From: Takakia lepidozioides
Taxonomy: Eukaryota; Plantae; Bryophyta
Assembly: GCA_030704615.1 (NCBI GenBank)
Contig: CM060732.1
Location: forward strand, 37,758,001-37,822,000
Length of the DNA: 64,000 nucleotides
Reading direction: 5' to 3'
Under the pieces are notes generated by a model. It had not been told where the DNA came from and ran no database searches. It saw only the letters and a program-made list of their open reading frames with translations. The translations under genes and the position numbers were made by a program. Shown here piece after piece: positions 15,076-50,792 of this stretch; the stretch's first letter is position 1, and every line of letters starts with the position of its first letter.

Positions 15076-15597
15076 GGCTCCAACTATTCAACAAACTCCC
15101 TCACTCCCTCAGTAATCTCTGTGTAGAGCAAAGCAATGCATTCTTTCCTAAGCCTTCAACCCTAGGATTGATTCGAAGCCTCAATCCCTCGCACCACTAA
15201 CTTACATTCTCTCATCTCCCTCATTCCCTCATCTCTCACATTTGCATTCCCCACGTTTGTTTCCACGCAGTCTTCACGGAGATCTAGATGCAGGCCGTGA
15301 GTTCAAATTCGTAAACTAAACAAAGCAACAAACAACAGGACTAGTCACGAGCAGGTACGTCCGACGAAGTGCGGTTTTCTCTTCGGACAATTTGCATAGC
15401 TTAAAGAAATGCGTGGTTTAGGTTTAGGGTTAGAGGACGGAGTTCTGGGAGGTGTTGGAGAGGGGCACTCTCCTCTTTACCGAGGATCCACGCTCGCAGG
15501 TGGATTGGTCGCTAGGGCATAAGAGGAGGCAGGAGGTTTGATGCGAGGAAAACAGTGCGACAACACTAGAAGAGAGTGAAAAAGAGACAGGAAGAAA
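15076..15597. promoter_or_regulatory. Probable bidirectional promoter and 5' UTRs of UFL1 and LEO1, with telo-box-like motifs
   Basis: The start codons are 522 bp apart in head-to-head orientation. GGTTTAGGTTTAGGGTTAG lies at ~15415-15433 and AACCCTAG at ~15158. Confidence 0.6.
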
Positions 15598-29940: not shown

Positions 29941-30736
29941 TCAACGTTTCTTCCACTTTTGAGGTCGCCCTTCGAAAGCTGCAACCGCCTCGGATGCGTT
30001 CCCCATTTCTGAGGCACGCACCCAAGATGCCTCCACATGATGATAACCCTTACTCCGTTTCTTGATTCTTGAACCTCCTCGACTTAAGCACTGTCTCCAC
30101 CTCGTACTCATGTTCATTTTCATGATCTAACAGCACAGGTGGCGGACGCAACACTTGAGGCCGATTCGGACGCGCTTCATCTTTGAAGTAAGGCTTAAAA
30201 AGGGAGACGTGGAATACCGGATGCACTTTGCTGTTTGGCGGCAGCTCCAACTCATACACGTCCTCATTCATAACCTTCCAGATGCGAAATGGTCCCGCAT
30301 ACGGAGGTACGAACTTCGGACTCACTTCCGGAGGTAGTCGAAAATTCTTGATGTTCAACCAGACCTCCGTGCCTGCCTCAAACTTGACTTCCCTCCGTTT
30401 CCGATTTGCTTGTCGTTCATACCGTTTCCTAGCTTTGGCGATGTTGTACTTTGCGAGCTTCAACAAGCGCTCGCGTTCCTCCAACACCGCTGTTGCTGCC
30501 GGTTCCTCTACGTCTTGGGCGGCCCAACTTGTCGGCACTAGAGGTGCTTTTCCATAGACCAATACGAAAGGGAAAACACCCGTTGCGGAGTGTTTTGTGT
30601 TATTATAACAGAACTCTGTCGCGTCCAAGTGCTTCACCCAGTCCGATTGGTCCGCCGACACATAATTCCGCAAGATCTGTTTCACTACGGAATTCACCCT
30701 TTCTGTTAGGCCGTCTGTTGTAGGTCGGAAGGCGGT
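29941..30736 (-). mobile_element. Chromovirus (Ty3/Gypsy) integrase C-terminus plus chromodomain
   Basis: TAFRPTTDGLTERVNS, FCYNNTKHSATG, GPF/Y motif (PYAGPFRI) and VHPVFHVSL are present. The chromodomain YEVETVL.../KGYHHVEASWV...AVAAF is split by a frameshift. Confidence 0.92.
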
Positions 30737-32579
30737 TGTTAAGTTATTTTACCACTAGTGTGAAACTAGCTAGGAAATAGCTAGCTTTTACATATTGACA
30801 TTTGGGATTGGCCCAAGTGTCAATCCAGGGGTCAAGGTAGATTTAGGCCCTGGAGTGGTTATCTTCACGGCAAGCGCAGGAGGCTCATCTTTCTCAAGTT
30901 GAGCCTCACCGCGCCTAGCTATGGCGCCGTAGTGTGGATTCCCCATGGCGTGGGGTGCACTTGGCTTGACTTGTATTTGAGTGATGACATGAGTTTATGC
31001 TTCAGCTTTGTGAGCTCGCATGAGCTTGTGCTTGTATTCTTCTTCTTTATCACTCGAGAAAGATCAGCTCGTATCTATGAGTGTCAGATACGAGTTAGTT
31101 GTAGCACTTGTGGTTTTTGCTTGAGAATGAGAGAAACCAGGTTGTTATGCAATGAGCACCGTGGAGCTCTTGGTTGTTAGAAGCGGAGGCGATGTGGGTT
31201 ACGAGGTGGTAAACCTTGGCATTCGATCTTCAGCTTCAGAGATGAAAGCACCATACTGCAGGTAATTCCAGAGCACCTTGATGGTTTTAGATTGTGTACA
31301 TGCATGAGCAAGCACGATTGGGAAGAGGACCAGTCAAGAGCAGGTTATAGTGGCTTTGGTGGCAAAGCTGAGAACTAGACTTGGGAATGCGAGCTTTCAT
31401 TGTGTGAAGGATTGCAAGACCAAGCAAAAGGGCTGATTTGGCTTGGGGCAAATCAGTGCACTTTGTGGAGTATGTTGAGAGTGGGTTTCAATCTTGAGCT
31501 TCAGCATTGAGAGGGCTCTTGTCATGGCAAGAGCAGGGCTGGAACAGGATCTAAGAGGTGCGGCAAGGCCATTGAATGTGCACCTAGGGTTTCAGAGCTT
31601 GGAAGAAGAGCTCTTGCACCACAAAAGGAGTGTCTTGTGGCTGGAAATGTAAGCCTTAGGGTTTCAGGAGCTTGGCAAAGGCTGTGGAGTGCTTAGTCTT
31701 GTCTTAGGGAGCATCAAGGAGCCAAGGAGCCAAGATAGGGGGCTGATACCTCTTGTGTGAAGAGGTTGCATGTGTGGAGCATGTATTCAGCTCATTGAAG
31801 CTTCCATCTTCAAGCTTGGAGGGCAAGCAAGGAAGAGGGAAGGGCTGACTTCCCTTATGTGAGAGCAATGCATGTGTGGAGCATGCTTTCAGCCTGTTGA
31901 AGGTTTGTACTTTCAGGTTTGGGAGTGCAAGAAAGGAAGGAAGGGACTGGTTTCCCTGTAGGGCATGTGTGGAGCATGATTCCAGCCCGCTGAAGCGTGT
32001 AATTTTAGGTTGGTGGGTGCAAGAAAGAAAGCAAAGGGCTTATGCTCTGGTGGTGAGAGTGGGGCATGTGTGGAGCATGCCTTCAGTCCATTGGGCTTTT
32101 GTCTTCAAGCTTTAGAGAACTAGAAGAGAAGGTAAGGGGCTGATCTGCTCTTATGTGACAGTCCGACACTTGTAGAGCGTGTTTTGAGTTGGGGTTTCAA
32201 CCTCAAGCCTAGATAGAGCATGGCTCTTGAAGTGGCAGGTGTAGGGGGCTAGAATAGGCTCTAAGACAGATGTTATAGCCAAGGGAAGCGCTTGAATGAG
32301 TGCTCACAAGGGCTGGAAACCAGCAAGGCTTGGTTGTTTGCCATTGAGTTTAGTGGCGTGTTTGGGGAGTCTAAGTGAGAAAGAAGGCTTGGTTTGTGGC
32401 AACCATCTTCCTCATGGCTTAGAGCTACTATTGGTGGTGTGTGGGAGCCGAAAGAGCAAGAATACCTTGCTGATTTCTTCACAGCCGCCATAGCTCAGTG
32501 CAAAGAAGCCTAGAGTCCAAGAGACACAAACCCTAGCTTGGCGTGGCTAGACCCCTTGGAGAAATGGCTAAACTGTCCT

Positions 32580-33410
32580 GAGTGGCCTGTGGGGCTGTGA
32601 CGGGCTGTGACAGGCTGTGCCCTGTGGCCTGTGGGGCTATGACGGGCTGTGATGGGCTGTGACAGGCTGTGCCATGTGCCTGTGGGGCTATGACGGGCTG
32701 TGATGGGCTGTGACCGGCTGTGCCATGTGGCCTGTGGGGCTGTGACAGGCTGTGATGGGCTGTGACAGGCTGTGCCCTGTGGCCTGTTGGGCTATGACAG
32801 GCTGTGTGGGCTGTGACAGGCTGTGCCAGGCTGTGCCCTGTGGCCTGTGGGGCTGTGACAGGCTGTGCCAGGCTGTGCCATGTGGCCTGTGGGGCTGTGA
32901 CGGGCTGTGACAGGTTGTGGCGAGCTGTGACGGGTTGTGGGGAGCTGTGACGGGCTGTGGCGAGCTGTGACGGGCTGTGAGGGGTTGTGACAGGCTGTGG
33001 CGGGCTGTGACAGGCTAAGCCCAGTGGCCTGTGGGGCTATGAGGGGCTGTGAGGGGCTGTGACAGGCTGTGCCCTGTGGCCCTGTGGGGCTGTGACGGGC
33101 TTGTAACAGGCTGTGGCGAGCTGTGACGGGCTGTGAGGGGTTGTGACAGGCTGTGGCGGGCTGTGACAGGCTAAGCCCAGTGGCCTGTGGGGCTGTGAGG
33201 GGCTGTGCCCTATGGCCTGTGGGGCTGTGACGGGCTGTGGCGAGCTGTGACGGGCTGTGACGGGCTGTGGCCTGTGGCCTGTGGGGCTGTGATGGGCTGT
33301 GACGGGCTGTGACAGGCTGACTTTGGCCTGTGGGGCTGTGACAGGCTGTGAGGGGCTGTGGCCTTTGGGGCTGTGACCCCTGCGACCTGTGTAGGGCTGT
33401 GACAGACTGT
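32580..33410. repeat. ~830-bp G-rich minisatellite of ~10-bp units (GGGCTGTGAC / GGCCTGTGGG) in the retroelement 5' leader
   Basis: Dozens of GGCTGTG cores are directly visible, with higher-order duplications (e.g. ~32950-33037 and ~33113-33197). Confidence 0.97.
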
Positions 33411-33901
33411 GCGCCATGCTAGTTTTGTGTGGGCGCTTGTTTTTATAGGTGATTGGTCCGGATTTGATCACCGGCCAGTCCTAGAGTATGTTGTCGATGG
33501 TGAGGCTGGGGTGATGACCAGCCAGACCATCATTGTTTCTCCTGTGGTGAGGTTGGAGGTGATGACCAGCCAACCATAGGAGTGCTTGCGGTGGATGCAG
33601 GTACAGGTGTAGGCTATGTTAGGAACTTAGTATTCCAAACCATAAGCCGCAACAGGTTCTCTACCTGGTTACCTTGTGGAGAGGGGGTTAGGGTTCATGA
33701 CTGGTTGAGTGTCAACACGGAGGTGCCACTAGTTGCTGGGGACAGTGCCGGTTCGAGCACTAGCGATACTAGTGGATACACGAGACGAGGTGTGCGGTTT
33801 AGGCCAGCTTCACCTCATGTGTCTTCTACGGAAGGTTCTGATTCGGATTGTGAATCAGGAGGACTCATACCGGCGGTAAAAGTTGTTTCCTTGCCATTGT
33901 T

Positions 33902-35110
33902 GTGGGACACAATGGAGGAGATGTATGGAGCTACCAAGGGCCACGAAGGTACTCTGGGGCGGTGGGCACCATCAAGTTGGATGATTTTATCCAAGAGTTT
34001 GATAGTTGGTGTGATTTGCAGCAAATGCGCAATCCACAACTATTTACGCCTTTCATGGCATGGAAGGGGCTGTTTCAACACCTTGAGGGGCCGCCTATGG
34101 ATGATTACCATGAGTTCAGGCGGGGGCATGAGGTTGAGATCGAGGAGTGGAGGATGTACTGGTCACCCGACTATGTCTCCATCACTAGGGGCACTAGAGC
34201 ATGAGGGCAGTGGCTACACCTGCCGCTGCACCGGCAGCTTCAGCAAGTAGCAGAGGGACTAGTGGGACTGGTGGTACAGTAGCTACGACGTCCACCCAAG
34301 CCACTACCGCACCAGCACCCGTGCCTGCCTTCAATCTTGTTGTGGAGTTCTTCGAAGAGTTGAGAGGGAACTACCAAGGGGTGAGGACAGAGAAGTTGCG
34401 GAGCTTGCAAGAGTTCCAACGGAAGCCGACCGAGAGCTTGAGGGAGGCTTTCACTCGCATGAGGCGCTTGATAAATGTAACCCAAGGGGTTACGGAAGCT
34501 TAGGCAGTCCAATTCTGGTATGGGATATTGGACAAGGAGCTGAGGAGAAGGGTGCGGGATGCAACTCTCCTACAAGCGGCCCAACCCACCTTAGCAAATG
34601 TGTTTTTGCTGGCAGAGCGGATAGAGCTTAACAAGGTGGAGGAACGAGTGATCATGGTGGGATTTGCTAAGGAGACACCACGGGGTAGTGGTGCTCCTAG
34701 CCAACCACTACCCTAGCCAACGTGCTCAAGGCAACAAGGGGGCTCAGGTGAAGCTCAGGGAAGGGCAGAGAGGACCTCAGATGCAGGGGTCTCTCCCTTC
34801 ATTTGCTGGCCAACAACGGGCGGATATGGTGTGCTGGACATGTGGAGGACCCCATATCAAGAAGGATTGCCCAGAGGGAGGCAAAGGGCCGGTACATGCA
34901 TAGCCTGCACAGTTGCAGTGTGGGCATTGTGGCAAGCATAGGCATGGAGAGGCCCAGTGTTATGACTTGCATCCTGAGTTGCGCCCAGACCAGTTCCAAG
35001 GGAACAATGGTGGCCGGGGGCGAGGTGGACCAGCCCAGAGAGGACGAGGTGGCCGGGCACGAGGTGTAGGCCAAGGGCAAGCTCAACATGGCCAAGGACG
35101 CGGAGGTTAG
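33902..35110 (+). pseudogene. Retrotransposon gag with two zinc knuckles
   Basis: GTIKLDDFIQEFDSWC and LQEFQRKPTESLREAFTRMRRL (gag core), then CWTCGGPHIKKDC and CGHCGKHRHGEAQC. In-frame stops occur, e.g. at 34501. Confidence 0.85.
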
Positions 35111-35829
35111 GATGTTGACCAAGGCATGGCCAACCGGCTTCAGCAGCTAGAGCAGAGGCTCGCTGCCATGGCTACAGCTCAGGTGGTACCGGCTCCCAAG
35201 CAGGATGGTCCACCTCCTGCTCCTGAGGGAGGAGATATGGGAGGCATGGGATTCATGTGCAGAACAACACTACCATTAGAGCAGGTGGAGTCTGCTGCAG
35301 TCGTGACTCGAGGAGCAGCACGAGTTCCTGAGCCACAAGGTGCAGAGGTGGAATCGGATCCACAGCGAGGGGAGGCAAGCCGTCAGGCGAGGCTTCCTCA
35401 ATCATTCACATTGGCGGAGACAGTGTCGACGCCATCCATGGCACCTAGTTCTCGCCCGACTGTTACCGAGGCGGAGGTTACTATGCCATTGGGGAGAGCT
35501 ACACGGGTAGCACCACTACCTAGTGTTGCCAAGGCTACGACAGCTAGTGTGCTGCTAGAAGCGGCCACATCTGTGTGCCAGGCTCCATTGTTCTCGGCTA
35601 CCATGATTGCGACGCCGGGGGTAAGACCAGCTGAGGTGTTCAGGCTGGCAGCTACACTCTGTGAGAGTGGGGAGGTTACTTCATCTTCTACGGAGATAGT
35701 GGGAGGTGTAGTGCCGGAGGGATCCTCGGATTTGAGGGTCAAGACTGCCATGGCGGCACCATGGCAAGTTGCAGCTGCCAGGTTGATGGAGCTACCAGCT
35801 AGGCCAGCCATTGAGCGCGCCATGGTGAC

Positions 35830-36300
35830 ACCTGGAGTTGTCATGTTAGACAACCAGGATGGCATTTTCTGTTTGAGTGGACCGGCAGGCAAGAGGTACC
35901 GGCCACTGCGGGTCTTGTTGGACTCGGGAGCTCAGCCATTGATGCTGGGCAGAGCTGCTATTGCAGGCTAGGGCCTCACGGAGGCGGATATGGAGCCTTG
36001 TCTTTTCCAGATACAGACGTCTCTAGGAGGATCGGAGCAGGCTCGGGGCATGACACGGCGTGAGTTGGCTATCAGACTACGGCCGGATCACCCTATAGAT
36101 GGCTCAGTGATGCGAGCCAAGGCCATTGTGACAGACGCGGTCTCATAGATGTCCTGGTTGGTGGGGCAGTGCTGTACCCCATGGGCTTCACCCTGGATTT
36201 TTGGGAGGAGTCAACTTCCTATAGGCCTGCATGGCAGTCAGGGGAGGGCCGGCGTGTGCACCTCCCTGTGACGTTCATAGGAGGAGTTACGGTTGCCCAA
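35830..36300 (+). pseudogene. Retropepsin-like aspartic protease
   Basis: Catalytic motif VLLDSGAQPLMLG at ~35911-35950, and YDVLVGGAVLYPMG after a 1-nt frameshift at ~36147. Confidence 0.8.
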
Positions 36301-36629
36301 CGAGGCAAGATGCCGACACTAGCAGCATTCACATCGGCAGTGAGTTGGCCTAGAGAGTTGCTTGAGGGCAACGCTCATTCAGAGGATGTACCACCTCCGG
36401 GAGAGCCTGATGACATGTATGGTATGGCAGAGTTGCCTAGCATGGTTGCTCAGATTCCATTGTGGGGCACGAGCAAGGATTTGCTGCGGGATGCTGATCG
36501 ACGGGTGCAACAAGCCTAGGTGGAGGCTTTTGTACCGTCAGGAGAGGAGGAGAGTGCGGGGATTGCACCAGGACCACCTCAGTTGTCTCCATTGGACACC
36601 ACACCTATTGTGTGGCAGTATCCGGATGA

Positions 36630-37600
36630 AGACATTTGTCTTCTGGACTTGTTTGGCGGGATCAGCACCGGATTGGCTGCTGTGTTACAGGCAGGTGTAC
36701 GAGTTCGGCGTTACCTGTATGTGGAGAGGGATGAGACTGCACGACCCATTTCACTTCGTCATGTTGCTCAGTTGGTGCAGCGGTACCCTGAGTTGTTGTC
36801 GATGTCTGCAATTTGTGGATATCAGCAGGCCTTGTCAGCAGACATTTCGTTGCTGGGGGCGCAGGATTTGGAGCGGGTTGGCTCCATTGATCTGGTAGTG
36901 GCTGCCAAGGGCATTCATCAGCCGGGCATGGCAATGGATTGCGAGACTCGAGGTCGGGTCTATTTTGGGAGATGGTGCGGGTTTTGCGCCACTTGCAGCT
37001 TCATCAAGCTGTATTTCCAGCATACATCTTGGAGAATGTGCCACTGATGGGCGATTCTCGGACCAGGGAAATGGCCAGTGTGCATCAAGTCTGGTCGTGG
37101 CTTGGGTCAGCAGTGTTGCTAGATGCAGCTACAGTGGGGTCACGGGCTCATCGTCCGTGGCTATGGTGGACTAACTTGATGCCACCCGCACTGCTCAAGC
37201 GTGCATTTGATGGGGTGCAGCGGCCAGCACATCTCACAGTGGATAGCATTCTGGACACAGGGAGGCAGTCTCAGCGTGTGAGACACGATGACCGTTCGCC
37301 TTTGGCAGTGGTCAACAAGATGGGTCAACCACGAGCAGCATTACCTACACTGCTCAGCTTCCCAGGATCGCATGCTTTCCGGGATAGTGGACCTGGCCTC
37401 CTGTGGGATGATCAGTTGCAGCAGTTAGTGGAGCCTAATGCTGACGAGCATGTGCGGGCAATGGGTTTTACCACTGGTACCACGACGGTGTCGTCTCTTT
37501 CTGAGGCATCACGTTGTCAAGTGTTGGGGCAAGCAATGGATCTCAATTGCTTGACCTGGATTATCAGCTTGGCTATGGCTGAGCAACGCAGAGTGCGGAG
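36630..37600 (+). pseudogene. DNMT3-like C5 cytosine DNA methyltransferase domain within the retrotransposon pol
   Basis: Motif I LLDLFGGISTG (~36640), II YLYVERD, IV IDLVVA/CQGHS (a short deletion at ~36902 removes the expected GWP and shifts the frame), VI ILENV (37032-37040), VIII LLDAATVGSRAHRPWLWWTNL, IX EPNADEHVRAMGF and X VLGQAMD are all present in canonical, non-permuted order. Confidence 0.93.
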
Positions 37601-37999
37601 TACACTTCCCTCGATGGTCTCTCTGCCTACCGAGACGGTATAGGCAGTGAGTGGGGGCGAGCATGTGAGGACCACGGGGTGCAGACATCCATGGCACACG
37701 TGGGAGGTGCTCGAGGTTCAGATGGAGTTGGCAGCCAAGGTGGCGATGAAAGATGAGGTTGGGGATTTTTCTCGGGTGGAGGAAGTCCTTGAGGATGAGA
37801 TGATGGGGCAGGATGAGGCCTTGTCACTGACTGAGTAGGTAGGGAGTACTGCTCAAGAGGTTGTAACATAGCAACCACTGGACGCGTCCTCAACCTCTAA
37901 GCCCACTGGACTTAAGGTTGCAGTTACGGAGGACAATTGGGAGCCTGACATTGGACCCATTGTCACCGGAGGAGAGAGACGACGTATACGGCGGTTCCT

Positions 38000-38640
38000 G
38001 AGGGCTTACAGGAATTGCTTTGCCTTCAGTTTGAAGGACTTGGGAGCACTGAAGGGTCAAGAGATCCGTATTGAGTTGGCCACTGACACGCCAATCTTTC
38101 GGAGACCCTATAGATACAGTGACATGGAGAGGTCTTTGATTCAGATGAGGACTCAAGATCTCTGGGAGGCAAGTTTGGTGGAGCTCTCTAGTGGAGAGTA
38201 TGCTTCAGCCACAAGAGGCCATTGCACAAATTCCACGCCCCACGGATGTGAGCCGAGTTCGAGCTTTCATGGGGTTATCAAACTATTATAGACGGTTTGT
38301 CAAGGGATTTAATACCATTGCAAAGGCTCTAACCAAGTTGACCAAGGTGGACCAGGAGTGGCAGTGAGAAGATAAGCAGGAACGAGCTTTTCAAGAGCTC
38401 AAGGTGAGGTTGACCTCGACGCCTATCCTGAGACGACCTATCAGGGGGCATCCCTTTCAGCTGCATACGGATTGGAGCATGTTGGGGCTTGTCACGGATC
38501 ACCAGCCACTCAAGTGGTTGATGGAGTCAGACAAGCTTACGGGGAAGCTTGCACGGTGGGCACTCATCCTCCAGGAGTATGACTTTCAGATTGTGCATCG
38601 ACCGGGTTTGGTCAATCGGGATGCGGATGGATTGAGTTGA
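38000..38640 (+). pseudogene. RT and RNase H remnants with internal deletions
   Basis: PIFRRPYRYS...SSGEYASAT jumps directly to RAFMGLSNYYRRFVKGF, so the YxDD core is missing. FQLHTDWS joins VTDHQPLKWL...KLARWALILQEYDF...ADGLS. Confidence 0.9.
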
Positions 38641-38849
38641 ATCCATGCATGAGCCAGCAGGATGACACTGGAGCTCGGTGGCATGGTGAGACGGACGAGG
38701 AAATGGTGTCGGGATGGCACGCATCTGCATTTTTGTGTATCTTGGCATCGGGAGGTCAAGTTGGACCTACAACAGGGATGACTGTAGACGGAGTGTCTGA
38801 GGACCCTGAGGCTAGTGATGAGCCAGGTGGTGCCAGAGATATACATGAG

Positions 38850-40060
38850 GATTCGGCTGTGTTGGACTACCTCCGCACGGGAGACACGGCAGCCACTGTG
38901 ACTGCCAGGGAGAGGGATCGGATCCTGCAACGAGCCAAGAGGTTCAAGTGGGAGGGGATACATCTACTTCGAATGTGGGAGGATGGTCGGGTGAGGATTG
39001 TGCCTCACCCCACACAGCGTGCATGGTTAGTGCGGCATGCCCATGAGGAGTTGGGGCATTTTGGAGTGCGACGCACTCACAGTTTACTGCAAGGGCAGTA
39101 TTGGTGGCGTGGTATGCATACAGAGGTGCAACAGTTCGTGGCTAGGTGCATGGTGTGTGACAGGGTGCGTGCTTCATTCAACACCCCTACACCACAGTTG
39201 CATCCTTTATCAATCATGGGATTGGGCTACAGGTGGAATTTTGACTTCGCAGGACCGTTGCCACTGACTATGCGCCACCACAGATATGTGTTGGTGATGG
39301 TGGAGCACTTCTCCAAGTTGATTGAGTTGGTTCCATTGCCTGACAAGGCTAGTGAGGGGGCTGCGTATGCATTCTTGGATCGTGTGCTTAGCCGATTTGG
39401 TGCTCCAGCTGAGGTACTCACGGACCAAGGGAGAGAGTTCTTGGGGGAGTTTCAGGCTTTGTGTGATAAAGCCTTGATAGACCACCGCACCACTTCTCGG
39501 GATCATCCTGAGGCCGATGGCTTAGCAGAGAGAATTGTTCAGACGGTGAAGAGGGGTTTGCGCAAGTATGGCTTGCAGAAATGACACCTAGGAGATTGGT
39601 CTTGGTTAGCCATGGGCTACAGGTTCAGCAAACAAGCATCACTTGCCTCCTTCTCACCATATTTCCTTCTCTTTGGCCGAGAGCCGGATTTGCCCGCAGC
39701 CATTCGTAGGGACACTACTCAAGTCCTTAACCTTGACGATCCGGACGTGTGGGTACGTGCATGTGATCAGCGTGCAAAGTTGTTCAAGAAAGTCATGCCC
39801 ATGGCTTTTGAGAACCTTGCCATTGCACAACACCGTGATACGTTGAGGTATGCCACTATACGTGATGGAGGATATCGTCCTGGGGTTCGGAGGTTTAGCC
39901 CTGGTGACTATGTTTATTTGCAGCAGACTGCTCCTACAACTCTGGATGTTACTGCAGGGCGTGTTATTCTGAGGGTTCGAGAGGTGTTGCCCTCAGGGGT
40001 CCTGATCTTGGAGGGTCGGGATTGCATGATTTGGAAGGACCATGTGCGTAATTGTGCGCC
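38850..40060 (+). pseudogene. Retroviral-type integrase
   Basis: HHCC finger (HAHEELGHFG...CMVC) and DDE triad (FDFAGP, TDQGREF, GLAERIVQ). A stop at 39582 and a small deletion interrupt it. Confidence 0.93.
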
Positions 40061-40127
40061 ATGTCACCTTCCCAATGTCGATGGCAAAGTTGACCCAAAC
40101 TTGGCAGTGGTACCTGCAGGTTTGAGG

Positions 40128-40271
40128 TGCATGCTCTGTGGATCTGCCAAAGGGGCAGCCACCATGCTGGTGTGTGATCGATGCTCAAGGGGTTGGCATA
40201 TGGGATGCTTGACACCACCTTTTGAGAAGGTTCCTGACGGAGATTGGTTGTGTCCACACTGCTTGGGATAG
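40128..40271 (+). CDS. PHD finger at the C-terminus of the retrotransposon integrase
   Basis: CMLC...MLVCDRCSRGWHMGCLTPPFEKVPDGDWLCPHC is a complete C4HC3 pattern, in frame with the integrase C-terminal ORF 39612-40271. Confidence 0.93.
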   Translation, partial: CMLCGSAKGAATMLVCDRCSRGWHMGCLTPPFEKVPDGDWLCPHCLG

Positions 40272-40417
40272 TGGCAGTGGACATGACTGGAGGCAACTAA
40301 CAAGACATGGGAGGCCAAGCTCATAGGAGTCAATACATGAGATCCCAAGCTCAAGTTCACAGGTTGCAAGACGGCGACTAACGATGGGGCAACTCTTGCA
40401 CCCGGCCTCTTGATCTA

Positions 40418-41300
40418 CACCACAAGAGATGAGCGTTTTTAGGACTACGGCTTTGGCAGAGTCATAAAAACTGCACTAGGTATACGACTACAGACCGCTG
40501 AAATGCGTTGCAATCATAGTTTTATCGCTCTGTAGTAATGGATATCACTACATGACTCTGGAAAGTTAGGGAGCATTGGTCAAACATTTTTGACCACGAT
40601 GACAGGGATGGTTTATATGACTAGTGTGATATGTTTGACTACACGTGGACGACGTTTCATGGAATCTTATGACTCCATGATTGAAGATGGTTTCACAGCT
40701 CTAATTATATGACTACATCACTACACGTGTCATTTTGAAGCCACATACACGAATGTATTCATCCATTGGATGAGTTCATCCACAACATGACATGGCATGT
40801 AAACTTATGACTGCCTAAGTGCAGGTTGTTTCATAACCTATAAATATGACTACATCACTACACGTGTCATTTTAAAGGCATTTATATGATTCTATTACTA
40901 CACGTGTCATTTTGAAGGCATATACATGAATGGATCCATCCATTGGATGATGAGCTCATCCATCCATGTTTACCACAAATTCCTATCAGCTTTGAATATG
41001 TGTGGGGAGTTGATATCTGTTCAATAAATTGGATCTGGATGGACGTGGCTTAACAAGCATCGCAAGATATATGAGATTAAGATACGCAATGGTCATGGTT
41101 GTACATGGAGATTATTTTGAATCGATAGATTGTATAAGATCTAACGGTCTAGATTGTTTAAGATCTAACGGTTTAAGATTAGGTATATCGAACTTCATGA
41201 GCAAATTCGCTTAAGTCTGGGCTGAGAGTTTTGGCAGATGCAACAATAGAAGGGGATGATGATGGTAGTAGGATTTTAGCCTATGACCACTAGAATTAAT
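40418..41300 (+). mobile_element. CACTA/EnSpm-like terminus with subterminal repeats
   Basis: Begins CACCACAAGA (one mismatch to CACTACAAGA). ATGACTAC and ACTACACGTGTCATTTT(G/A)AAG repeats follow at ~40720, ~40857 and ~40897. No partner TIR was found. Confidence 0.55.
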
Positions 41301-41857
41301 CAAAGTGCAAAAAGTTAATTTTTTTTCAAAAAGTTGCTTATAGGGTTTGCAAAAGGTTTAAAAAAATCAAAAAATTGCTTATAGGGTTCCCTGAACAAAG
41401 GCCTGGGACTTGGGCTTTTTTTTTTCTCCTGTGCCTGCGAGAGATGTTGTGTCATGGAACGTGATGATGCTGGAGCGTGGGATAGAGGCTTTGCAGACCT
41501 ACCCACTCTTGAACAAATGAAGGAGAGGAGGAGGATGAGACGAGACAACTCCGACATCATCCGACATCTCTCGTCATCTCGTCGAGGAGGAGAAGCTCCC
41601 AATATTCTTGCGAGATCGCCGTTTTTGGGAGAGAGACGAGACGAGGAGAAGCTCGCCGTTCTTGGGAGAGTCAGCTTGGTCTTAGCAGGCCGTGTTTCAA
41701 TCTCTGCCTGCTCAGGTGCACCGTGGTGGTTCGATCTCACATACCAATCTGACATCACCTGACTACAGACACAAGCAGCACACACAAGAGGTCCTTTTGG
41801 GTTGATGGTCCGTCAAATCCTCCATGGGTCATGACACAAGGTCAAGAACAATGTGGT

Positions 41858-44160
41858 GAGGGCACCTTCTTCTTCAACCTGTTTCAGCCTGTTTTGCCCT
41901 CTCATCAGACTCGCCCTGAGATGCATATTGAATCCTGTAAGTTAGCTTGTTGGGCGGATCTGTGGTGGTTTAGAGTGACTTTGACAAGTTGCTGCCGATG
42001 CAGCAGCAGGAAAGTATCCAAAAATAAGTAACAGAGATGAGGAGAAGCTTTGGAATGAACACTTTTCCGACCCCAGTCAATGGCGGGACAATGGAGACAA
42101 TGCCTGTTGGACTATACTAGAGAGAAGCAGATGCAATTCAGAATTGGAACTACTGTAATAATTAGGGTTGGGGTGTTTGCTGGAAGAACTTCACGGCGTC
42201 AGTGTCAGCTGCTTACATCAAGTATTCATGATTTGTACACAGGCAGGGATAGCTGAAGGACCAGGGATAGAGGTCCAGATTCATCCAAGAAGGCCGGATT
42301 TCAAACACAAGATTACTTCTGATTCCCTGTGGATCAACAGCTGCAAGACATCTGCTAATGAGAAGATGGTCTGCTAATGACAACACCTTCTTCAACACAT
42401 TTCACCCTGTTTTTCCTTATCAGAATCGGCCCTAAATTTTCATGTTGAATTCTGCAAGTTAGCTGGTTGAGTGAACATGGGATAGTTTGGAATGACTTTG
42501 ACATGAACCTGCCAATGTGACAACATGAAAGTATCCAAAAAGAGGTAACAAAGATGAGGAGAAGTTGTGGAATGAATACTTTTTTGACCCCAGTCAATGG
42601 TGGGACAACCGAGCCAAAAAGGTGAATGTCTGTCATGATTTTGATCACCAGTCATGTTGCGACCCGAGGCCCTGTTGTCTTGGGCTGACATGCAGGGCAG
42701 TGCTGAAAATCTGGCTTTCCGCTGTAAAAGTAATGAACTTTTCATATTTTGGAGGTTGTGTGACCTGGTTGGGATTGCATCTTTGTGCAAGATCTTTCTA
42801 CATGTTCAAGTGTGTGCCAGTTTCTACGAAGCATTGCACCTGATGAGGCCCTTTGGTGCAAGCTGTAAGTTTTCCTTCCAAAGCATTTTGTCCCCTTGGT
42901 TTTGCTGTCTAGGGCTATGATCATGGCATTTATGCTTCTGATCTCGGCTGCCTCTGCTGGTCAACAGAGCTAAAGATCTAGATGGTTTTGTGGTTTTTTT
43001 TGGTTCTCAGGTACATGATGATCTTGTGGTGGTGGATACATCGGTTGCAGACCAAGTGACAGCATGGCGGCGCAGCCAAAGCATGACTGACGTATATGCT
43101 GGTGATCATTGGTGCTCTGGTAGAACCTGTACGTACCATCAAATTGGTGACGTTTTCTTGCGAGAAGACTGGCAAAGCCCACAGTACTGTTACTACCTAT
43201 ACTCAGACTTTGCCAACCTCCAATACTCAACCTTTGTGCACGGTTTAGATTCTGATCACTGCCCCTGCCCTGGTGGACATGTATGCCAAATGTGGGTGCA
43301 TCGAGGATGCCAAGGGAGTGTTCAACACTATGGCTGAAGGAGACGTGGTGTCGTGGAGTGCGATGCTTGCAAGGTAGGGGGTGCGGGATGGAGGCTTTGG
43401 AGACCTATGAGCAAATGATGGGGGAAGGGGGCTCGTTCTTCAATAGCATAGCGCTACAAGTGGGTAGATGGTCAACTGGAAACAGCAGCGGCAGCAGCAC
43501 AATTCATAGAATAAGGTGCTGCTAATGAAGGTACCTTCTTCAACGTATTTCACCCTGTTTTCCCTGCTATCAGAGTCGTCCCTAAATTTTCATGTTGAAT
43601 TCTGCAAGTTAGCTCATTGGTGGATCTATGGTGGTTTTGGAGTGATTTTGACATGTTACTGCCAATGTGGTCGACAGGAAAGTATCGAAAAATAAATAAC
43701 AGAGACTCGAGGAGAAGCTCTGGAATGAATACGTTTCCGACCTCAGTCAATGGTGGAACAATCGAGACAAAAGGTGAATGTTTTTTGGAAACAGACGTAA
43801 GTCAGCATAGGAACTAGTGTGATAAGTAGGGTTGGTGTGTTTGCTCAAGCAATTCTAGGCTATCATTCTCAGCTGTTACCAGCAAGGCGAGGATGTATGC
43901 ATGATTTGTGCAGGGGCATGGATAACTGAAGGAGCAGGGATAGAGTGTGGGTCCAGATTCATCCAAGAGGGCCGGATTTCAAGCTCCAGATTACCTATGA
44001 TTCCCTGTGGAAAGATAGGTACAAGAAACCTGTATGGGTCGATGGTCAACTGGAAGCCGCAGCAACAGCGGCACAATTGATCAAATCAGGCACTGTTAAT
44101 CAAGGCACCTTCTTCAACACATTTCACCCTGTTTTTCTCTCTTATCAGAATCGACCGTAT
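41858..44160 (+). pseudogene. Mosaic of captured host gene fragments: repeated OSB-type PDF-motif exons, an F-box SKIP31-like exon and a PLS-class PPR fragment
   Basis: EKLWNEYFFDPSQWWDNR (three copies) and HPRxPDFKxxITxDSLW (two copies); DTSVADQVTAWRRS...HWCSGRTCTYHQIGDVF (43011-43180); ALVDMYAKCGCIEDAKGVFNTMAEGDVVSWSAML (~43267-43370). Confidence 0.7.
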
Positions 44161-44599
44161 CAAGAAATATTGCACTGTTTAACATGGTCCTTGATTCTAC
44201 TAGCACCAGAACAAATTAGTACTACAACCCATGTATGTGGGCTTGCTTATTTTTTGCATACTCGGCCTTTTCAGGCATGGATTTTTGGACCTTGTGGCCT
44301 TTGAGGTATCCATTGGGACAGTGGTCTCATTTGGATTTTTGTAATATAATTTACAGGGCGTGTATTCCCCTGTACTTGTATATTTTGACTGTCATTGTGG
44401 TTGCTAGTATGCAAGAGGGGTCCATTATGTTTTTATATCGGAATTTCACCATGTAATGAAGAATTTAAATCATTTAATCTATTTTATTTTATATAACATT
44501 ATTAAATTAAACAATAATACCATTTAATAAAAATTTCCAAGCTGGTATCCCCTTGTTTTTAAAAATAAAATATTAATTTAATAATTATAAATTATAAAT

Positions 44600-47500
44600 A
44601 ACATACTTATCGGCCTCCTCCCTCAGTTTGGGCCAAAAATACTCTTTCTTCAAGAGTGTCGCGGTGCGTTTGGCTCCGCCATGGCCCGCAAGCGGGTCAT
44701 CATGGCATTCTCTCAAGAGACTATCTTTGATCCCTCCCTTCGGCACATAGAGACGTTTTTGCTTATACCGGAGCAGTCCATTTTGCAAGTGGAACTGCGA
44801 TTTAACCCCCATCCTCAAGTCCCGCATCACGGACTCCGCCATCTCATCCTTCCGGTAAGCCTTCCGGTAAGCCTTCCGGAGCGCCGTCTCGCCCCTGTAC
44901 ACCATCATGAGCTGCTGCTTTCTACTTAAAGCATTGGCCACCACATTGTCTCGTCCCGGTTTGTACTGGATATCCACGTCGAACAGTGCCAAAGTGTTTT
45001 GCCACCTAATTTGTTTTGGGAACAACTTAGGTTGCGTGGCAAAATACTTCACTGTGATATTGTCCGTGAACACCTTCACCGGGTTGGAACCAATATAGTG
45101 GCGCCAAAGCTCAAGGCAATGCACCACCGCCTTCATTTCTTTCTCGTACGTAGGCCACCGTCACTCCACTTCATTCAGTTTCTTACTTTTGTAAGCCACT
45201 GGACGTCTATCCTGCATGAGTACACCCCCAATTGCGAAGTCCGACGCATCTGTATGAATATCAAATGGACGGTCGAATTCCGGGATTTTGAGGACTGGAG
45301 CTTCCGCCATCCACTGCTTCAACTCAGCAAAAGCTTGGCCACAAAAGGTGTTCCATACCCAGACTTTGGATTTACACAGAAGGTCTGACAACGGCCCCGC
45401 GATCTTGGCGAAATTTCTCATATACTTACGGTAGTAGGAGGCGAGTCCTAGGAAGGATCGCACTCCCGGGACCGAAGTCGGAGGCTCCCAGTCCAAGATC
45501 GCCCTCACCTTTCTGTCATCCATTTTTATCCCATCATGTGTAATCACATGCCCCAGGAACTCCACTTTTGTGACCCTGAATTCGCACTTTGAAGCTTTGG
45601 CATACAGCTTCCCTTCCCGCAATTTCTGGAACACCCTTTTTAGGTGCTCCAGGTGCTCTTCCTTTGTTTTCGAGTACACCAAGATGTCGTCGATGTACAC
45701 GATCACAAAGTCATCCAACCACTCCTGGAAAAGGCTGTTCATTAGCGTGCTAAAGGTCGCGGGTGCGTTGGTGAGCCCAAAAGGCATCACCAAGAACTCA
45801 TATGAACCATACTTTGTCCTGCACGCGGTCTTCTCCTTGTCTCCTTCTGCCACTTGAATTTGATGGTAGCCGGAGCGCAAATCGATCCGGCTGAAATACT
45901 TCGCTCCTGCCAACCGATCAAAAATGTCGTCGATCCTTGGCAAAAGGTACCGGTTTTTTATAGTCACCTTATTTAGAGCCCTGTAATCGACACACATCCG
46001 CAGCGTCCCATCCTTCTTGTCTGCGAATAGCACCGGGGCTCCGTAAGGTGACTTATTCGGCCGGATGTACCCCTTTGATATTAGATCCTTGAGCTGAGTC
46101 TTCAGCTCGACCAACTCTCTGTGGCTCAACCGGTAGGGCGCCTTGGCAGGCGGCTCCGATCCCGGTATCACCTCAATCTTGTGGTCAACTCCTTTTCACG
46201 GTGGCAAGCCGCTTGGTAAGTCCTCCGGCATCACATCCTGGTATTTCTCCAAAATCCCCTTGATCCAATCTGGGCTCGGCTCCCTATCGCCTTCTCCCTT
46301 CACTTGTCTTACATAAAGCAAAAACTGGGGCTCGTGTGACTCCTCCACGGCCCACTCCCTTGCTGACAGAAAGTTTATTCGCCCTCCCACGGGGTTGGGC
46401 GTTTCCGACACTCATAAAACTTCGCCACCATTCCCACACGGTAGCGTAACTACTCTCTTGCGGCCATCTATGACCGCTCCGGATCTGCTCAAAAAGGTCA
46501 TCCCCAAAATGAGATCCACTCCATCGATGTCGCAAATGGTGAAGTTCTCACGTCCCTCCCAACTCCCCAGTTGAAGAGGAACATCGAAGCCAATTGTGGT
46601 TCTCCTTTGGCAGAACGCACCTCAATAGAGGCCCCCACATCACTTGTCGGGAGTCCCAGCTTCCGTGCCGTTGCCGGCGTCGTGAAGGAGTGCGGCGCTC
46701 CTGTGTCCACCAACAACGACACGTTAGTTCCGGAGATTATCCCACTCACAAACATTAACTGACTCCCTTTACGCAAGGCGCTAGTTTCCTGATACAACTC
46801 ACAAAAGTAGTTGCCTATCTTGCAAGTCTTGGCGACCACTGCCTCCACCAAGCGGCTAATGGAATCCTCGGACGACTCCGTGGTTGCCTGAGTCATGTTC
46901 AATTGTCGGGGTTTCGCGCACTTTTTTGTCATATGCTCGGGTTTCCCGCAATTAAAGCACACTCCATCGAAGGTCGCCTTCTGCCCGCCATAAGCTGTCG
47001 CACCAGGTTTTCCTTTCGGGGCACCGGGTGCCGTCTTGACGTGTGAGGGCCCTCCCTTTGATTTCCATGTGCTATTGTCGCTACGTGGCCTATCCCACTT
47101 CTTTTCCGATCGGAAGGAGTCACCCTCCCGCCGGGTCTTCTTGTGGTTCAGCTCTGTACGGCCTTGTTTTTCGCCCCTAGGGACATTCGAGAAGCATTCA
47201 GCCCTCTCAATTGTCTAGTTCAAAGTCTTAGGTGGCTTCTCCTCCAACTTCCACCTGGCCCATGGGGCTAGTCCCGCCACAAAGTTGAAGACCATTTCTG
47301 GTTCTGCCTTGTCCGCGACTTCAAGCAATAGCACATTGAAAGCCTGAACATATCCCCGAATGTTAATTTATTTGCTTCAAATTCCTCATCTTGTTCCGGG
47401 CGAGCCAGGACGCGTTGAGGGGCACAAACTGTCTCTTCATCAGTTCCTTGAACTCACTCCAGTCAAAGGTTTCCGGGTTTGGACCTCGGTTGTGAAGGCG

Positions 47501-49822: not shown

Positions 49823-50792
49823 TCATCTGTTTGTGGAATGGAACTTCAACCAATCCTTGTAGAATTGTGCATACTGCCTTGTGTTGTTATCAATGGCGAC
49901 CTCGTACATCTTGTCCAGCCGCTGCAACTGGTTCTCTTGTTCTGGGCTCACATTTGATGCACCATTGGCAGATAGACTTATGTCGCTTTCAGCCCAGTTC
50001 TGATCTGCAGTGTATTGTTCAACGGGGTTGGGTACAATGGATTGCCGCTGTTGCGAGTACCAGGCCATAAGTTCCCTGAGATGTGGGAAAAAGAGGTGCT
50101 CCCACAGAGCTGGTGCGAACTCCAAACGAGAGGAAGCTGGATCCACCATGAACATGTCCAGTATGTGTCTGGTTCACAAGAATTTACGGGCCATATTACT
50201 TCAGATCTAGATAGCCGTGAGGATTCGGATAAGGTACAACAAATTCATTGACAAGAAGAACCTGTGGTGCAAGTCCGCAAGTCGAATTTAAACGTGCCAG
50301 GACGCGTACAGAATTCACGAGAAATTCCTTGGGAGCGCATGGTGTGATATAAAGAGGAGAATACCTAGTGGTCTCGCGGTCGTGGTCGCGAAGCTTGCAC
50401 ACAAAGGCGAGATTGAGGTGCGCCCATGCTGCGAGATAAGAACTGGGCAGTCCTGCTGTGCTGGAGCTCCCCTGACTATGGAGCTCTGCACAAACTTGGA
50501 GCAACTTCTCTGCGTAGTCCAGCCGAATGGACCTCTCCATTATGTCCGTGGCGGCAAGAGCTCCCTCCACAGCATCAATGCCCCAGTTCAGATTGGAGAG
50601 AATTGCCCGCTCAACGTAGGGGGGTCGGGACTTTGGTTTCTGCAACTTGGCCACACGATCTGCGTATTGCTCCTTATGCTGTTTGCGATGGCCCGTGTCT
50701 AGCAAGGCGTCCAATGCATATCGTCCCACCATCTGTACCATTGCCTCCACAGCTGCTTTATCAATCTCCGCTGCGAAAATTTGAGGCGTCAT
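49823..50792 (-). CDS. Truncated LIN/CERBERUS paralog, N-terminal LIN domain only (2 exons, 257 aa)
   Basis: Exons 50792-50365 and 50168-49823 with a GT-AG intron give 774 nt with no internal stop. It encodes AILSNLNWGIDAVE...RLDYAEKLLQVCA...YLAAWAHLNL...HILDMFMVDP..SRLEFAPALWEHLFFPHL...NTRQYAQFYKDW. Confidence 0.85.

Follow-up and report, generated by a model that had tools for sequence, protein, structure and literature searches.

Does the moss Takakia lepidozioides harbour a retrotransposon family that carries its own DNA methyltransferase, or was a methyltransferase fragment caught up in a single element? The window analysed here (64,000 nucleotides of contig CM060732.1) contains one decayed Ty3/Gypsy polyprotein, readable at 33854-40271 in the order gag (with two CCHC-like knuckles), protease, C5 methyltransferase (MTase), reverse transcriptase (RT), RNase H, integrase and PHD finger, all on the forward strand (Table 1). 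This is the domain order given in the initial annotation, which had further described the frames joining the MTase to its neighbours as broken only by point stops. The frames are indeed continuous, but a 10-bp deletion interrupts the MTase, and the window copy carries 10 in-frame stops, at least six frame breaks, a deleted RT core and a truncated 3' end. This copy is dead and cannot function.

Table 1 Features of the MTase-bearing element in the window.
Feature	Position	Strand	Remarks
Presumed 5' terminal repeat and long leader	30737-33853	+	Element membership presumed
gag, capsid-like part	33854-34713	+	Three pieces: frame 2, then frame 1; stop 34501
Two CCHC-type zinc knuckles	34832-34960	+	Read from translation; stop at 34901 between them
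Aspartic protease	35765-36165	+	LLDSG at 35915-35929
MTase N-half, motifs I-III	36520-36903	+	Same frame as post-protease segment
MTase C-part	36891-37640	+	Motif IV, ENV, DAATVGSRAHR..WWTNL, target-recognition region, motifs IX-X
Linker and RT N-terminus	37644-38213	+	Same frame as MTase C-part; RT N-terminus 37872-38213
RT thumb and RNase H remnant	38214-38637	+	Thumb 38214-38364; RNase H 38368-38637
Integrase, H2C2 zinc domain and DDE core (rve)	38583-39581	+	PF17921 E=1.2e-15; PF00665 E=1.2e-12
Integrase C-terminal region and PHD finger	39585-40271	+	Natural stop 40269
3' untranslated tail	40272-40417	+	Up to truncation point; PPT-like motif and 3' repeats missing

In the 5' part of the polyprotein, the gag region gives a weak Pfam match below the cutoff (PF03732 Retrotrans_gag, 34198-34500, E=0.0023), and its DNA is homologous to the gag regions of loci from Marchantia (L004, 80% over 111 bp), Sphagnum (L006) and Calypogeia (L001). 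The first knuckle, CWTCGGPHIKKDC near 34832-34870, has CX2CX3HX4C spacing (zf-CCHC E=0.015), while the second, CGHCGKHRHGEAQC at 34919-34960 and downstream of the stop, fits CX2CX4HX4C and gave no match in the Pfam search. The protease reading frame meets a stop at 35969 and switches near 36064-36145, and its pieces by themselves had no Pfam match. Residues 53-158 of the related protein P0276 match 35765-36082 at 45% identity (tblastn), and the part with LLDSG aligns with the Asp_protease_2 domain that this relative carries at residues 99-185 (PF13650).

Downstream of the MTase, the linker and RT N-terminus (..PIFRRPYR.. at 38091-38114, with stops at 37641, 37836 and 37869) are collinear at 89% with L005, a close second copy of the element whose homologous ORF carries RVT_1. 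RT and RNase H are present as annotated, except that the RT catalytic core and part of RNase H are missing through deletions of 548 bp at 38214 and 174 bp at 38488, respectively, seen as gaps relative to L005 and L001; PF17917/PF17919 match the RNase H remnant. The integrase, with DFAGP at 39243 and TDQG at 39420, has a 1-bp frame break at ~38640. It is followed by a Cys4-His-Cys3 PHD finger at 40128-40262 (PF00628 E=9e-11) that is also found in L005 (88% identity, Pfam E=4e-10), and the Pfam search of the window gave no match to a Chromo domain.

Based on the comparison with related loci, the extent of 30737-40417 first assigned to the element holds for its coding part, whereas 40417 is a truncation point rather than a natural end, and 30737-33850 is only a presumed 5' repeat and leader. 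Homology to L005 ceases exactly at 40417; beyond the equivalent position L005 runs into a motif, GGACCTAACCACCAGCTAGGGGGGCG..TTGTGGTA, that is common to Sphagnum L006 and Calypogeia L007. The presumed 5' repeat begins with TGTTAAG, which differs by one transition from the TGTCA that opens the 5' repeat of L006 and L007, and the integrase homology of an outer element ends at 30739, beside its start. Repeats of ~100 bp (31740-32100) and a tandem array of 10-bp units (32546-33400) lie between this start and gag. No second copy of this stretch was found in the window or in the related loci examined, nor was an LTR or terminal repeat pair found within the window.

The MTase shares its frame with the polyprotein segments on either side, and the frame map confirms the continuity noted initially: the N-half carries on frame 1 of 36064-36516 with one stop between, and the C-part carries on in frame 0 into 37644-38288. 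The N-half, with motif I (LFGGISTG) at 36649-36672, aligns to P0274 (57% identity) and to P0005, and its best PDB matches are all DNMT3A motif I, yet weak (E~0.15). In the C-part, motif IV reads GSGCQGHS at 36894-36917, with the Cys retained and GCQ instead of PCQ, followed by ENV at 37029-37040, DAATVGSRAHR..WWTNL at 37122-37178 and LGQAMD, the end of motifs IX-X, at 37524-37541. The annotated C5 MTase is borne out by the HMM search, in which the stop-free piece 36891-37640 matched PF00145 with E=1.9e-7 (31.3 bits against a gathering cutoff of 22). This piece is matched by 973 protein clusters (best E=6e-90; 106 at E<1e-30), many of which are polyproteins of 1000-3400 aa.

Taken alone, the flanking stops and internal frameshift of the window MTase could suggest juxtaposed fragments, as expected if a single copy had taken up a piece of a host DNMT3 or if a retrotransposon had inserted into a host gene. 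The frameshift, however, is a 10-bp deletion at ~36902, inside motif IV, that is private to the window copy, L005 reading ..VVAGWPC at this point. The same domain occupies the same place in L005 (89-91% nucleotide identity), in the likewise collinear loci from Calypogeia (L001, L007), Sphagnum (L006) and Marchantia (L004), and in K. nitens and Closterium proteins, the nearest named relatives of the element being liverworts and Sphagnum. In relatives such as P0010 and P0352 it sits within single intact ORFs (zf-CCHC, (PR), MTase, RVT, RNase H, IN). The MTase also evolves under purifying selection, with a dN/dS of 0.31 between the window and L005 and pN ~0.22 against pS ~0.76-0.80 across genera, comparable to neighbouring regions (IN 0.13, IN-C/PHD 0.20). 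No DUF3444, ADD or PWWP companion domain was found beside it in the Pfam search of the window, and there was no sign of an intron-bearing host-gene capture. A one-off capture, contradicted by collinear copies in several genera, intact ORFs and purifying selection, is therefore given almost no credence. The MTase is an integral part of this family, and MTase-bearing elements of this kind are widespread in green algae and bryophytes.

With respect to the type of enzyme, a profile of 40 domains matched DNMT3A best (5e-26, in three collinear blocks), followed by a partial match to DRM (7e-15) and M.HhaI (1e-9), with DNMT1 absent from the list. An AlphaFold model of the domain (pLDDT 95.7) retrieved only DNMT3A/B/C as its top 50 Foldseek matches in the PDB (target-normalised TM ~0.83), although identity over the fold alignment is only ~20-23%. 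The proposed DNMT3 rather than DRM affinity is supported by this profile and fold match, within a comparison to solved structures in which DNMT4-type enzymes have no representative among the matches. The motif order is linear (I-X) and not permuted, as in the catalytic domains of DNMT3A/3B/3C and in plant DNMT3 (PpDNMT3b; PMC6453930), and motifs such as ..FGG..TG.., DA..V..AHR.R..W.NL and ..R..LG... are shared. Unlike DNMT3, the window MTase is extended between motifs VIII and IX and, lacking the companion domains named above, is embedded in a retrotransposon polyprotein.

In the MTase tree, the window groups on one side with Closterium proteins and with GAQ93235.1 (P0127) of Klebsormidium nitens, a protein that may be one of the published KnitGypsy-Dnmt3 copies. 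As the MTase clusters with these algae, the element belongs to the streptophyte 'Gypsy-DNMT3' lineage already described in the literature, as does KnitGypsy-Dnmt3 of K. nitens (de Mendoza et al. 2018, PMC5890265). Both have Gypsy gag, protease, RT, RNase H and integrase and an intron-less, non-permuted DNMT3-related domain in Pol under purifying selection, and GAQ93235.1 shares the order zf-CCHC, protease, MTase. A further resemblance lies in the repeats, which are direct and split in bryophyte relatives (5' X ... Y X Y 3') and were called DIRS-like in K. nitens (PMC5890265). A DNMT3-type C5 MTase in Pol between protease and RT is a trait of this lineage. The novelty initially suggested for land plants was thus overstated, as elements of this kind were already published from a charophyte and the Klebsormidium relative shares the window's side of the tree. 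The window element differs in its host, in an MTase that is only ~39% identical to that of the K. nitens protein, and in the terminal PHD finger of the window, L005 and Sphagnum copies, which is not mentioned in the main text or the supplementary files checked of PMC5890265. Relative to the literature searched, bryophyte hosts of Gypsy-DNMT3 elements and a PHD finger recurring with the MTase are new.

The same holds for a second architecture, RT-RH-MTase-IN-PHD, of chlorophytes and metagenomes, e.g. the Scenedesmus sp. PABB004 'pol' KAF8056149.1. Its MTase is 35-40% identical to that of the window and likewise shares a Gypsy-type Pol with a PHD at the C-terminus, but is placed between RNase H and integrase and lies on the opposite side of the tree (SH-aLRT 96). 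Other retrotransposon-encoded C5 DNA methyltransferases, those of SymbioDIRS-Dnmt3 and SymbioLINE-DNMT in dinoflagellates and of the EpiLTRs, where the enzyme is also joined with a chromatin reader, reside on DIRS, LINE and DAM-chromovirus backbones and are independent acquisitions in their authors' view; the EpiLTR DNMT was added at the pol 3' end and is reported as sister to DNMT4 (bioRxiv 10.64898/2026.05.21.726589).

DNA methylation by this lineage is predicted from sequence, and the MTase could instead be a regulatory or scaffolding pseudo-enzyme like DNMT3L, or an RNA m5C methyltransferase acting on element RNA. Pseudo-enzymes of the DNMT3L type lose the catalytic Cys, ENV and motif VIII Arg motifs. 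These are invariant or nearly so in the 40 divergent domains, and intact relatives keep GWPCQGH / ENV / ..AHRxR..WTNL / GxxMD; motif IV is the canonical GWPCQGH in streptophytes, whereas most chlorophyte relatives have ECQ in place of PCQ, which would fit a loss of DNA methylation. RNA methylation has been raised for a LINE-borne DNMT that was inactive on DNA in yeast, and the enzyme for which DNMT activity was shown is that of the Symbiodinium DIRS element and not that of the Klebsormidium Gypsy element (PMC5890265). The best structural matches are DNA-bound catalytic domains of DNMT3A/B/C and not DNMT2, and we regard a role other than DNA methylation as unlikely. DNA and RNA substrates cannot be distinguished by sequence.

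The integrase of the bryophyte branch ends in a PHD finger, for which the best solved matches (CHD4, KDM5A/B PHD1, ATXR5, PHF21A, DPF3, AIRE, UHRF1) are H3K4me0 readers. Chromoviruses also carry a histone-tail reader at the C-terminus of a Ty3/Gypsy integrase, presumably directing integration to a chromatin state, but theirs is a chromodomain, which tethers them to H3K9me chromatin and serves as a model for PHD tethering. PHD fingers occur in integrases of algal LTR elements, e.g. REM1 of Chlamydomonas. MTase and PHD occur together in L005, L006 and 30 of the full-length class-A proteins. Among class-B polyproteins, those inspected from Closterium and metagenomes (P0115, P0352, P0010) gave no PHD match to Pfam, so in the clade of the window the writer does not always come with the reader. 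The 'self-contained epigenetic module' of the initial annotation may describe such elements, as suggested by the repeated pairing of MTase with PHD and the conservation of catalytic motifs.

Possibly, MTase and PHD serve the host, either as a device by which the element limits itself, silencing new copies and being tolerated on that account, or as a gene domesticated at this locus. A DNMT could slow retrotransposition and thereby raise the fitness of host and element (PMC5890265), and the element is CpG-depleted (observed/expected 0.51), while transitions account for 77% of the changes that separate it from L005, both being expected of methylated DNA. This depletion is not specific to the element, however, since flanking DNA is similarly depleted (0.48-0.62), and 10 stops, deletions and truncation show that the locus is not domesticated. 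Such a service to the host seems less probable still than an MTase that does not methylate DNA, although self-limitation and benefit to the element are not mutually exclusive and would look alike in sequence.

In intact members of the Gypsy-DNMT3 lineage, the protease would cut Pol, and the MTase would stay with RT and integrase inside the particle or the pre-integration complex, where it may methylate the element's own cDNA, a model proposed by de Mendoza et al. 2018 (PMC5890265), or the DNA around a new insertion, while the integrase PHD would tether the intasome to nucleosomes with unmethylated H3K4. We consider it likely that this region is a dead, 3'-truncated 'Gypsy-DNMT3' copy of a Ty3/Gypsy family whose intact members mark and target their insertions in this manner. 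New copies would then land, and be marked, in silent chromatin, in which they may do the host the least harm.

The element was read along a single path, obtained by stop-to-stop translation of 33.4-40.5 kb in the three forward frames, which runs from gag to a terminal PHD finger (see table). Within Pol the order is protease (PR, 35765-36165), reverse transcriptase (RT, 37872-38364), RNase H (RH, 38368-38637) and, last, integrase (IN, 38583-39581), with a methyltransferase (MTase) placed between PR and RT. Two CCHC zinc knuckles lie in gag (34832-34960; the first is spaced CX2CX3HX4C), and Retrotrans_gag and zf-CCHC gave weak Pfam matches in the polyprotein. RT_RNaseH, RT_RNaseH_2, Integrase_H2C2 (1e-15), rve (1e-12) and PHD (PF00628, 9e-11) were matched as well. 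The protease piece alone had no Pfam match; an LLDSG at 35915-35929 aligned with the Asp_protease_2 region of a related protein, P0276. The set of RVT_1, RT_RNaseH/RT_RNaseH_2 and Integrase_H2C2, which is typical of Gypsy elements, was found by Pfam in a 5-kb close copy of the element (L005) and in the related protein P0010, and Gypsy affiliation of the Klebsormidium nitens RTs has been reported (PMC5890265). No Chromo match was obtained on 39585-40268, unlike the integrase C-terminus of chromoviruses, and Pfam places the PHD there instead.

Broken genes of the window were searched one piece at a time. ORFs opened at the first start codon gave PF00145 (DNA_methylase) at E=0.08 only, so that the MTase was missed, and a stop-to-stop piece including motif IV was needed to recover it by Pfam. 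On 36891-37640 the match then reaches 31.3 bits (E=1.9e-7) against a cutoff of 22, which bears out the C5-MTase proposed in the initial annotation. Motifs I, IV (with the catalytic Cys), VI (ENV), VIII, IX and X follow each other in linear, non-permuted order. The motifs named in that annotation are all present, and it was also correct that the N-half of the domain continues the frame of the post-protease region and the C-half that of the RT N-terminus, as seen in the stop-to-stop frames. The window frames, the single-ORF relatives and the collinear copies all have the MTase in frame inside Pol and intronless.

Searches of single window pieces against PDB sequences with phmmer were weak (E~0.15-0.4), and it was a profile of 40 intact MTase domains from relatives (A1) that was decisive. 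Among sequences of solved structures this profile matched DNMT3A best (5e-26, three collinear blocks), followed by DNMT3B (4e-24) and DNMT3C, with DRM (7e-15, permuted and partial), M.HhaI (about 1e-9) and DNMT2 (4e-7) lower; DNMT1 was not listed among these matches. When an AlphaFold model of the first A1 sequence (pLDDT 95.7) was compared with the PDB by Foldseek, the top 50 matches were all DNMT3A, DNMT3B or DNMT3C (E~2e-20, target-normalised TM ~0.83). Profile and predicted fold thus identify the MTase as a non-permuted, DNMT3-like domain in a comparison with solved structures, a set without DNMT4-type or host plant DNMT3 sequences, and the earlier preference for DNMT3 over the permuted DRM holds. 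In a profile search of the protein collection, the best 120 matches all belonged to the TE-associated family, with no host DNMT3 or DRM among them. Among the 40 domains the catalytic Cys and the motif VI Glu (ENV) do not vary, nor do the D-A and a single Arg in motif VIII; the ENV Asn and most other motif VIII residues (..GS.AH.xR..N) are nearly invariant (90% or more), and the LGRxMD of motif X is a majority-level consensus. Motif IV reads GWPCQGH(S/T) in streptophyte sequences and GWECQDLS, with Glu for Pro before the catalytic Cys, in most chlorophyte and metagenomic relatives (A1; relatives P0010-P0138).

In a library of 1.84 billion proteins, 36891-37640 matches 973 clusters at E<=1e-3, 106 of them below 1e-30, and many of the matches are polyproteins of 1000-3456 aa in which the matching stretch is central. 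P0010 (2188 aa) encodes zf-CCHC, protease, DNA_methylase, RVT_1, RNase H and integrase in one ORF, and a further related protein, P0352, has a similar architecture. At the DNA level, loci of Calypogeia fissa (L001, L007), Sphagnum troendelagicum (L006) and, as a fragment, Marchantia polymorpha (L004) align collinearly with the window (67-80% nucleotide identity), and Marchantia paleacea, Riccia sorocarpa and Sphagnum jensenii are further named relatives within the length limits of the search. Liverworts and Sphagnum are the closest named relatives of the window element, and the closest copy is in run SRR327418; from these affinities a land-plant host is probable. Between the window and L005, dN/dS is 0.31 in the MTase (214 codons), 0.13 in the integrase and 0.20 in IN-C/PHD; across genera, pN of the MTase is ~0.22-0.26 and pS, which is saturated, ~0.72-0.80. 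Readings of the domain as a one-off capture or a chimera are therefore rejected, given the position of the MTase throughout the family, in single-ORF relatives and in collinear copies across genera, and given its dN/dS. The initial annotation had called the MTase integral to pol, and the family agrees with it.

A maximum-likelihood tree of 67 MTase domains, built without an outgroup and without host DNMT3, SymbioDIRS or EpiLTR sequences, splits cleanly between two architectures, PR-MTase-RT-RH-IN and RT-RH-MTase-IN-PHD. All 40 proteins with the order RT-RH-MTase-IN(-PHD), Scenedesmus and Cymbomonas included, fall on one side of a branch with SH-aLRT 96, and the other side (27 rows) holds K. 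nitens, Closterium, metagenomic PR-MTase-RT proteins, bryophytes and the window. The window and L005 lie within a bryophyte clade of nine rows (SH-aLRT 99). GAQ93235.1 of K. nitens (P0127) is on the window's 27-row side, but in a basal polytomy of this tree without outgroup; it has zf-CCHC, protease and DNA_methylase in the same order as the window. Closterium proteins carry zf-CCHC, PR, MTase and RT or, in others, MTase, RT, RH and IN. From K. nitens, de Mendoza et al. (2018) described KnitGypsy-Dnmt3, with intronless Dnmt3-related domains in a Gypsy Pol, Ka/Ks < 0.2 and DIRS-like repeats (PMC5890265), and later papers by the de Mendoza group use the wording 'streptophytes (Gypsy-DNMT3)'. Domain order, the side taken in the MTase tree and the repeat layout of the relatives together make the window element, on sequence grounds, a probable member of this known streptophyte lineage. 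The literature searched contains no report of Gypsy-DNMT3 elements from land plants, nor of their PHD finger. Physcomitrella and Selaginella were part of the 2018 genome survey, and Marchantia and Sphagnum are absent from the supplementary files consulted (PMC5890265). What is usefully added to the known lineage is its range in bryophytes, its association with a PHD and a second architecture, that of chlorophytes.

The PHD (40128-40262) has the full Cys4-His-Cys3 signature (CMLC..CDRC..H..C..CPHC). Among solved structures it is closest to CHD4 PHD1/2, PHD1 of KDM5B and KDM5A, PHF12, ATXR5, PHF21A/BHC80, DPF3, AIRE and UHRF1, whose PHDs read the H3 tail with unmethylated K4. It reads ..SRGWHMGC.. 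and lacks an aromatic-cage Trp at the second residue ahead of the His; the Trp beside the His we take to be a structural position, a functional reading that follows general knowledge of such PHDs. The PHD of L005 is 88% identical to that of the window and is matched by Pfam, and in Sphagnum L006 it is partly conserved. A PHD also forms the terminus of 30 full-length and 19 partial polyproteins of class A (chlorophyte and metagenomic RT-RH-MTase-IN(-PHD) proteins), and Pfam found none in the Closterium and metagenomic proteins examined from class B (PR-MTase-RT-RH-IN). The MTase writer is thus frequently, though not invariably, paired with a PHD reader.

The copy in the window is a functionless fossil. 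Its lesions (see table) were called against L005, a 5-kb contig of the public run Logan SRR327418, by global alignment and the frames of both copies; identity to window 36325-40417 is 89-91%. That every gap in this alignment is a lesion of the window was ruled out, as three of them (1 bp at 37805, 1 bp at 38387 and 11 bp at 39600) disrupt the frames of L005 and not those of the window. Motif IV is degraded to GCQ and cut by a deletion where close relatives have GWPCQGH, and several conserved Arg codons of the MTase now read Trp, Cys or His when compared with A1 (HRPWLWW, ADEHVRAMGF, SRCQV). Transitions make up 319 of the 412 substitutions (77%) between window 36325-40417 and L005, with 57 at CpG. 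This transition bias and the Arg losses fit a silenced element whose methylated cytosines were deaminated.

Direct and inverted scans of 26-46 kb and 30-41.5 kb, and a blastn comparison of 30-42 kb with the entire window, revealed no pair of terminal repeats, and an initiator-tRNA-type 12-mer matched as primer binding site at chance level only. Homology to L005 ends exactly at 40417. L005 has a further 139 bp beyond this point, running into the motif GGACCTAACCACCAGCTAGGGGGGCG(A)TTGTGGTA, which is kept in Sphagnum L006 and Calypogeia L007 just 5' of their 3' repeats. Because of this continuation, 40417 is ruled out as a natural element end, and the window copy is, judging from these alignments, truncated there with its 3' repeats missing, so that no LTR pair is found in the window. 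On the 5' side the sequence borders, at 30737-30739, on the C-terminal end of an integrase that belongs to another, minus-strand Ty3-type element. The sequence starts with TGTTAAG, one transition away from the TGTCA with which the 5' repeats of L006 and L007 open, and 30737-33853 is presumed to be part of the element. Between this presumed 5' end and gag lie four repeats of ~100 bp (31740-32100) and an 850-bp G-rich array (32546-33400) of 10-bp units (GGCTGTGAC/GGGCTGTGA-like) with higher-order periods of ~42 and ~103 bp; CpG observed/expected in this repeat-bearing stretch is 0.30.

Instead of a pair of identical LTRs, L006 and L007 carry split direct repeats, in the order 5' X, internal region, Y-X-Y, the 3' layout being Y-X-Y-X-Y in L007. 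Their ends are TGTC...GACA, and the internal Y|X junction is GACA-GC-TGTC, a palindrome that resembles joined element ends. The Y unit of ~100 nt and the upstream G-run motif are conserved between these two, a moss and a liverwort. Split repeats are uncommon in elements whose integrase is of the DDE type; those of L006 and L007 fit the remark on DIRS-like repeats in KnitGypsy-Dnmt3 (PMC5890265), the window copy itself being without a 3' end.

A second Ty3/Gypsy element occupies the minus strand. Its two parts are collinear with one polyprotein and lie 13.9 kb apart, with ~118 aa of the integrase core missing, and since they are collinear over this distance, the DNMT3 element and the material at 40418-44584 may be enclosed by it. 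At 44585-47000 CpG observed/expected reaches 0.88, above the rest of the window. At 41800-44150 (+), three diverged repeat units with spacings of 517 and ~1150 bp encode ..EEKLWNEYF.DPSQWWDNR.. and ..RPDFKHK.T.DSLW..; they have no Pfam match and presumably resemble the 'PDF' motif of plant OSB single-stranded-DNA-binding proteins. These units may represent part of a host gene or else captured sequence. Besides other retroelements, the window contains plant genes, namely a UFL1-like ORF and, on the plus strand, a LIN-like U-box/ARM E3 ligase (PF04564 + PF23654; U-box + ARM_LIN_2nd). Its N-terminal region has a diverged copy ~2 kb upstream, on the minus strand and in head-to-head orientation. 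Within the length limits applied, homologues of a BTB-like host ORF were not found.

Features of the DNMT3 element, its lesions, the split repeats of two relatives (positions in their own loci) and neighbouring features of the window
Feature	Position	Strand	Remark
gag	frame 2 33854-34200, then frame 1 34198-34713	+	stop-to-stop translation
Zinc knuckles and protease	frame 2, 34652-36145	+	stop-to-stop translation
Post-protease segment and MTase N-half	frame 1, 36064-36903	+	stop-to-stop translation
MTase C-part, linker, RT N-terminus	frame 0, 36891-38213	+	stop-to-stop translation
RT thumb and RNase H	frame 1, 38149-38637	+	stop-to-stop translation
Integrase and PHD	frame 0, 38583-40271	+	natural stop at 40269
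In-frame stops (n=10)	34501, 34901, 35108, 35969, 36517, 37641, 37836, 37869, 38365, 39582	+	translation
Upstream frame switches	~34200, ~34650-34713, ~36064-36145		
10-bp deletion	~36902, inside motif IV		window lesion; L005 has ..DLVVAGWPC there
548-bp deletion	38214		window lesion, RT catalytic core gone; L005 retains ..YIDDIIIF.. and Pfam RVT_1
174-bp in-frame deletion	38488, RNase H		window lesion, against L005
1-bp deletion	~38640		window lesion, against L005
L006 split repeats	5741-6079 and 14362-14931		
L007 split repeats	5855-6193 and 14454-15429		
Second Ty3/Gypsy: zinc knuckle and protease	46498-46962	-	
Second Ty3/Gypsy: RVT_1 and RNase H	45161-46171	-	
Second Ty3/Gypsy: RNase H/Integrase_H2C2	44585-45136	-	
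Second Ty3/Gypsy: integrase C-terminal SH3 (Tf2-1-like)	30050-30697	-	part spans 30050-30739
LIN-like gene and N-terminal copy region	50196-50867 (-), 52767-54202 (+), 56657-60881 (+)		
LINE-like (non-LTR) RT fragment	62635-63805	+	weak RVT_1 at 62635-63402
LINE-like (non-LTR) RT fragment	19394-19870	-	RT-like ORF, no Pfam match

As far as sequence comparison reaches, these results establish a Gypsy Pol with a DNMT3-type domain that has intact catalytic motifs in live relatives, is kept by selection and is often accompanied by an integrase PHD. The observation made in the initial annotation is confirmed, and the structural side of its interpretation is supported. With respect to function, we infer that the MTase would act on the cDNA of the element or on its insertion site, and that the PHD would tether integration to H3K4-unmethylated chromatin, by analogy with the chromodomains of chromoviruses and the H3K4me0-reading ADD of DNMT3A. 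Alternatively, the MTase could methylate RNA, could have a non-catalytic role, or could be self-limiting for the element. It is also possible, if on balance doubtful, that Gypsies with a DNMT3 writer and an H3K4me0-type PHD form an ancient green-lineage clade (chlorophytes, Klebsormidium, Closterium, liverworts and Sphagnum) that persisted into land plants. The pair would then be a co-selected module that chooses and marks silent chromatin, in elements with split direct repeats despite a DDE integrase and with possible exchange of the MTase with host DNMT3/DRM.

Retrotransposons that encode the silencing enzyme of their host strikingly reverse the usual arms race, and descriptions of DNMT-bearing retrotransposons had so far been limited to dinoflagellates and a single charophyte. 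The streptophyte Gypsy-DNMT3 is no oddity of Klebsormidium, as it is also found in Closterium, several liverworts and Sphagnum, with a sister architecture in chlorophytes and hundreds of public protein clusters in the lineage. Since bryophytes such as Marchantia are tractable in terms of methylomes and genetics, the role of a transposon-borne DNMT would be testable in a land plant.
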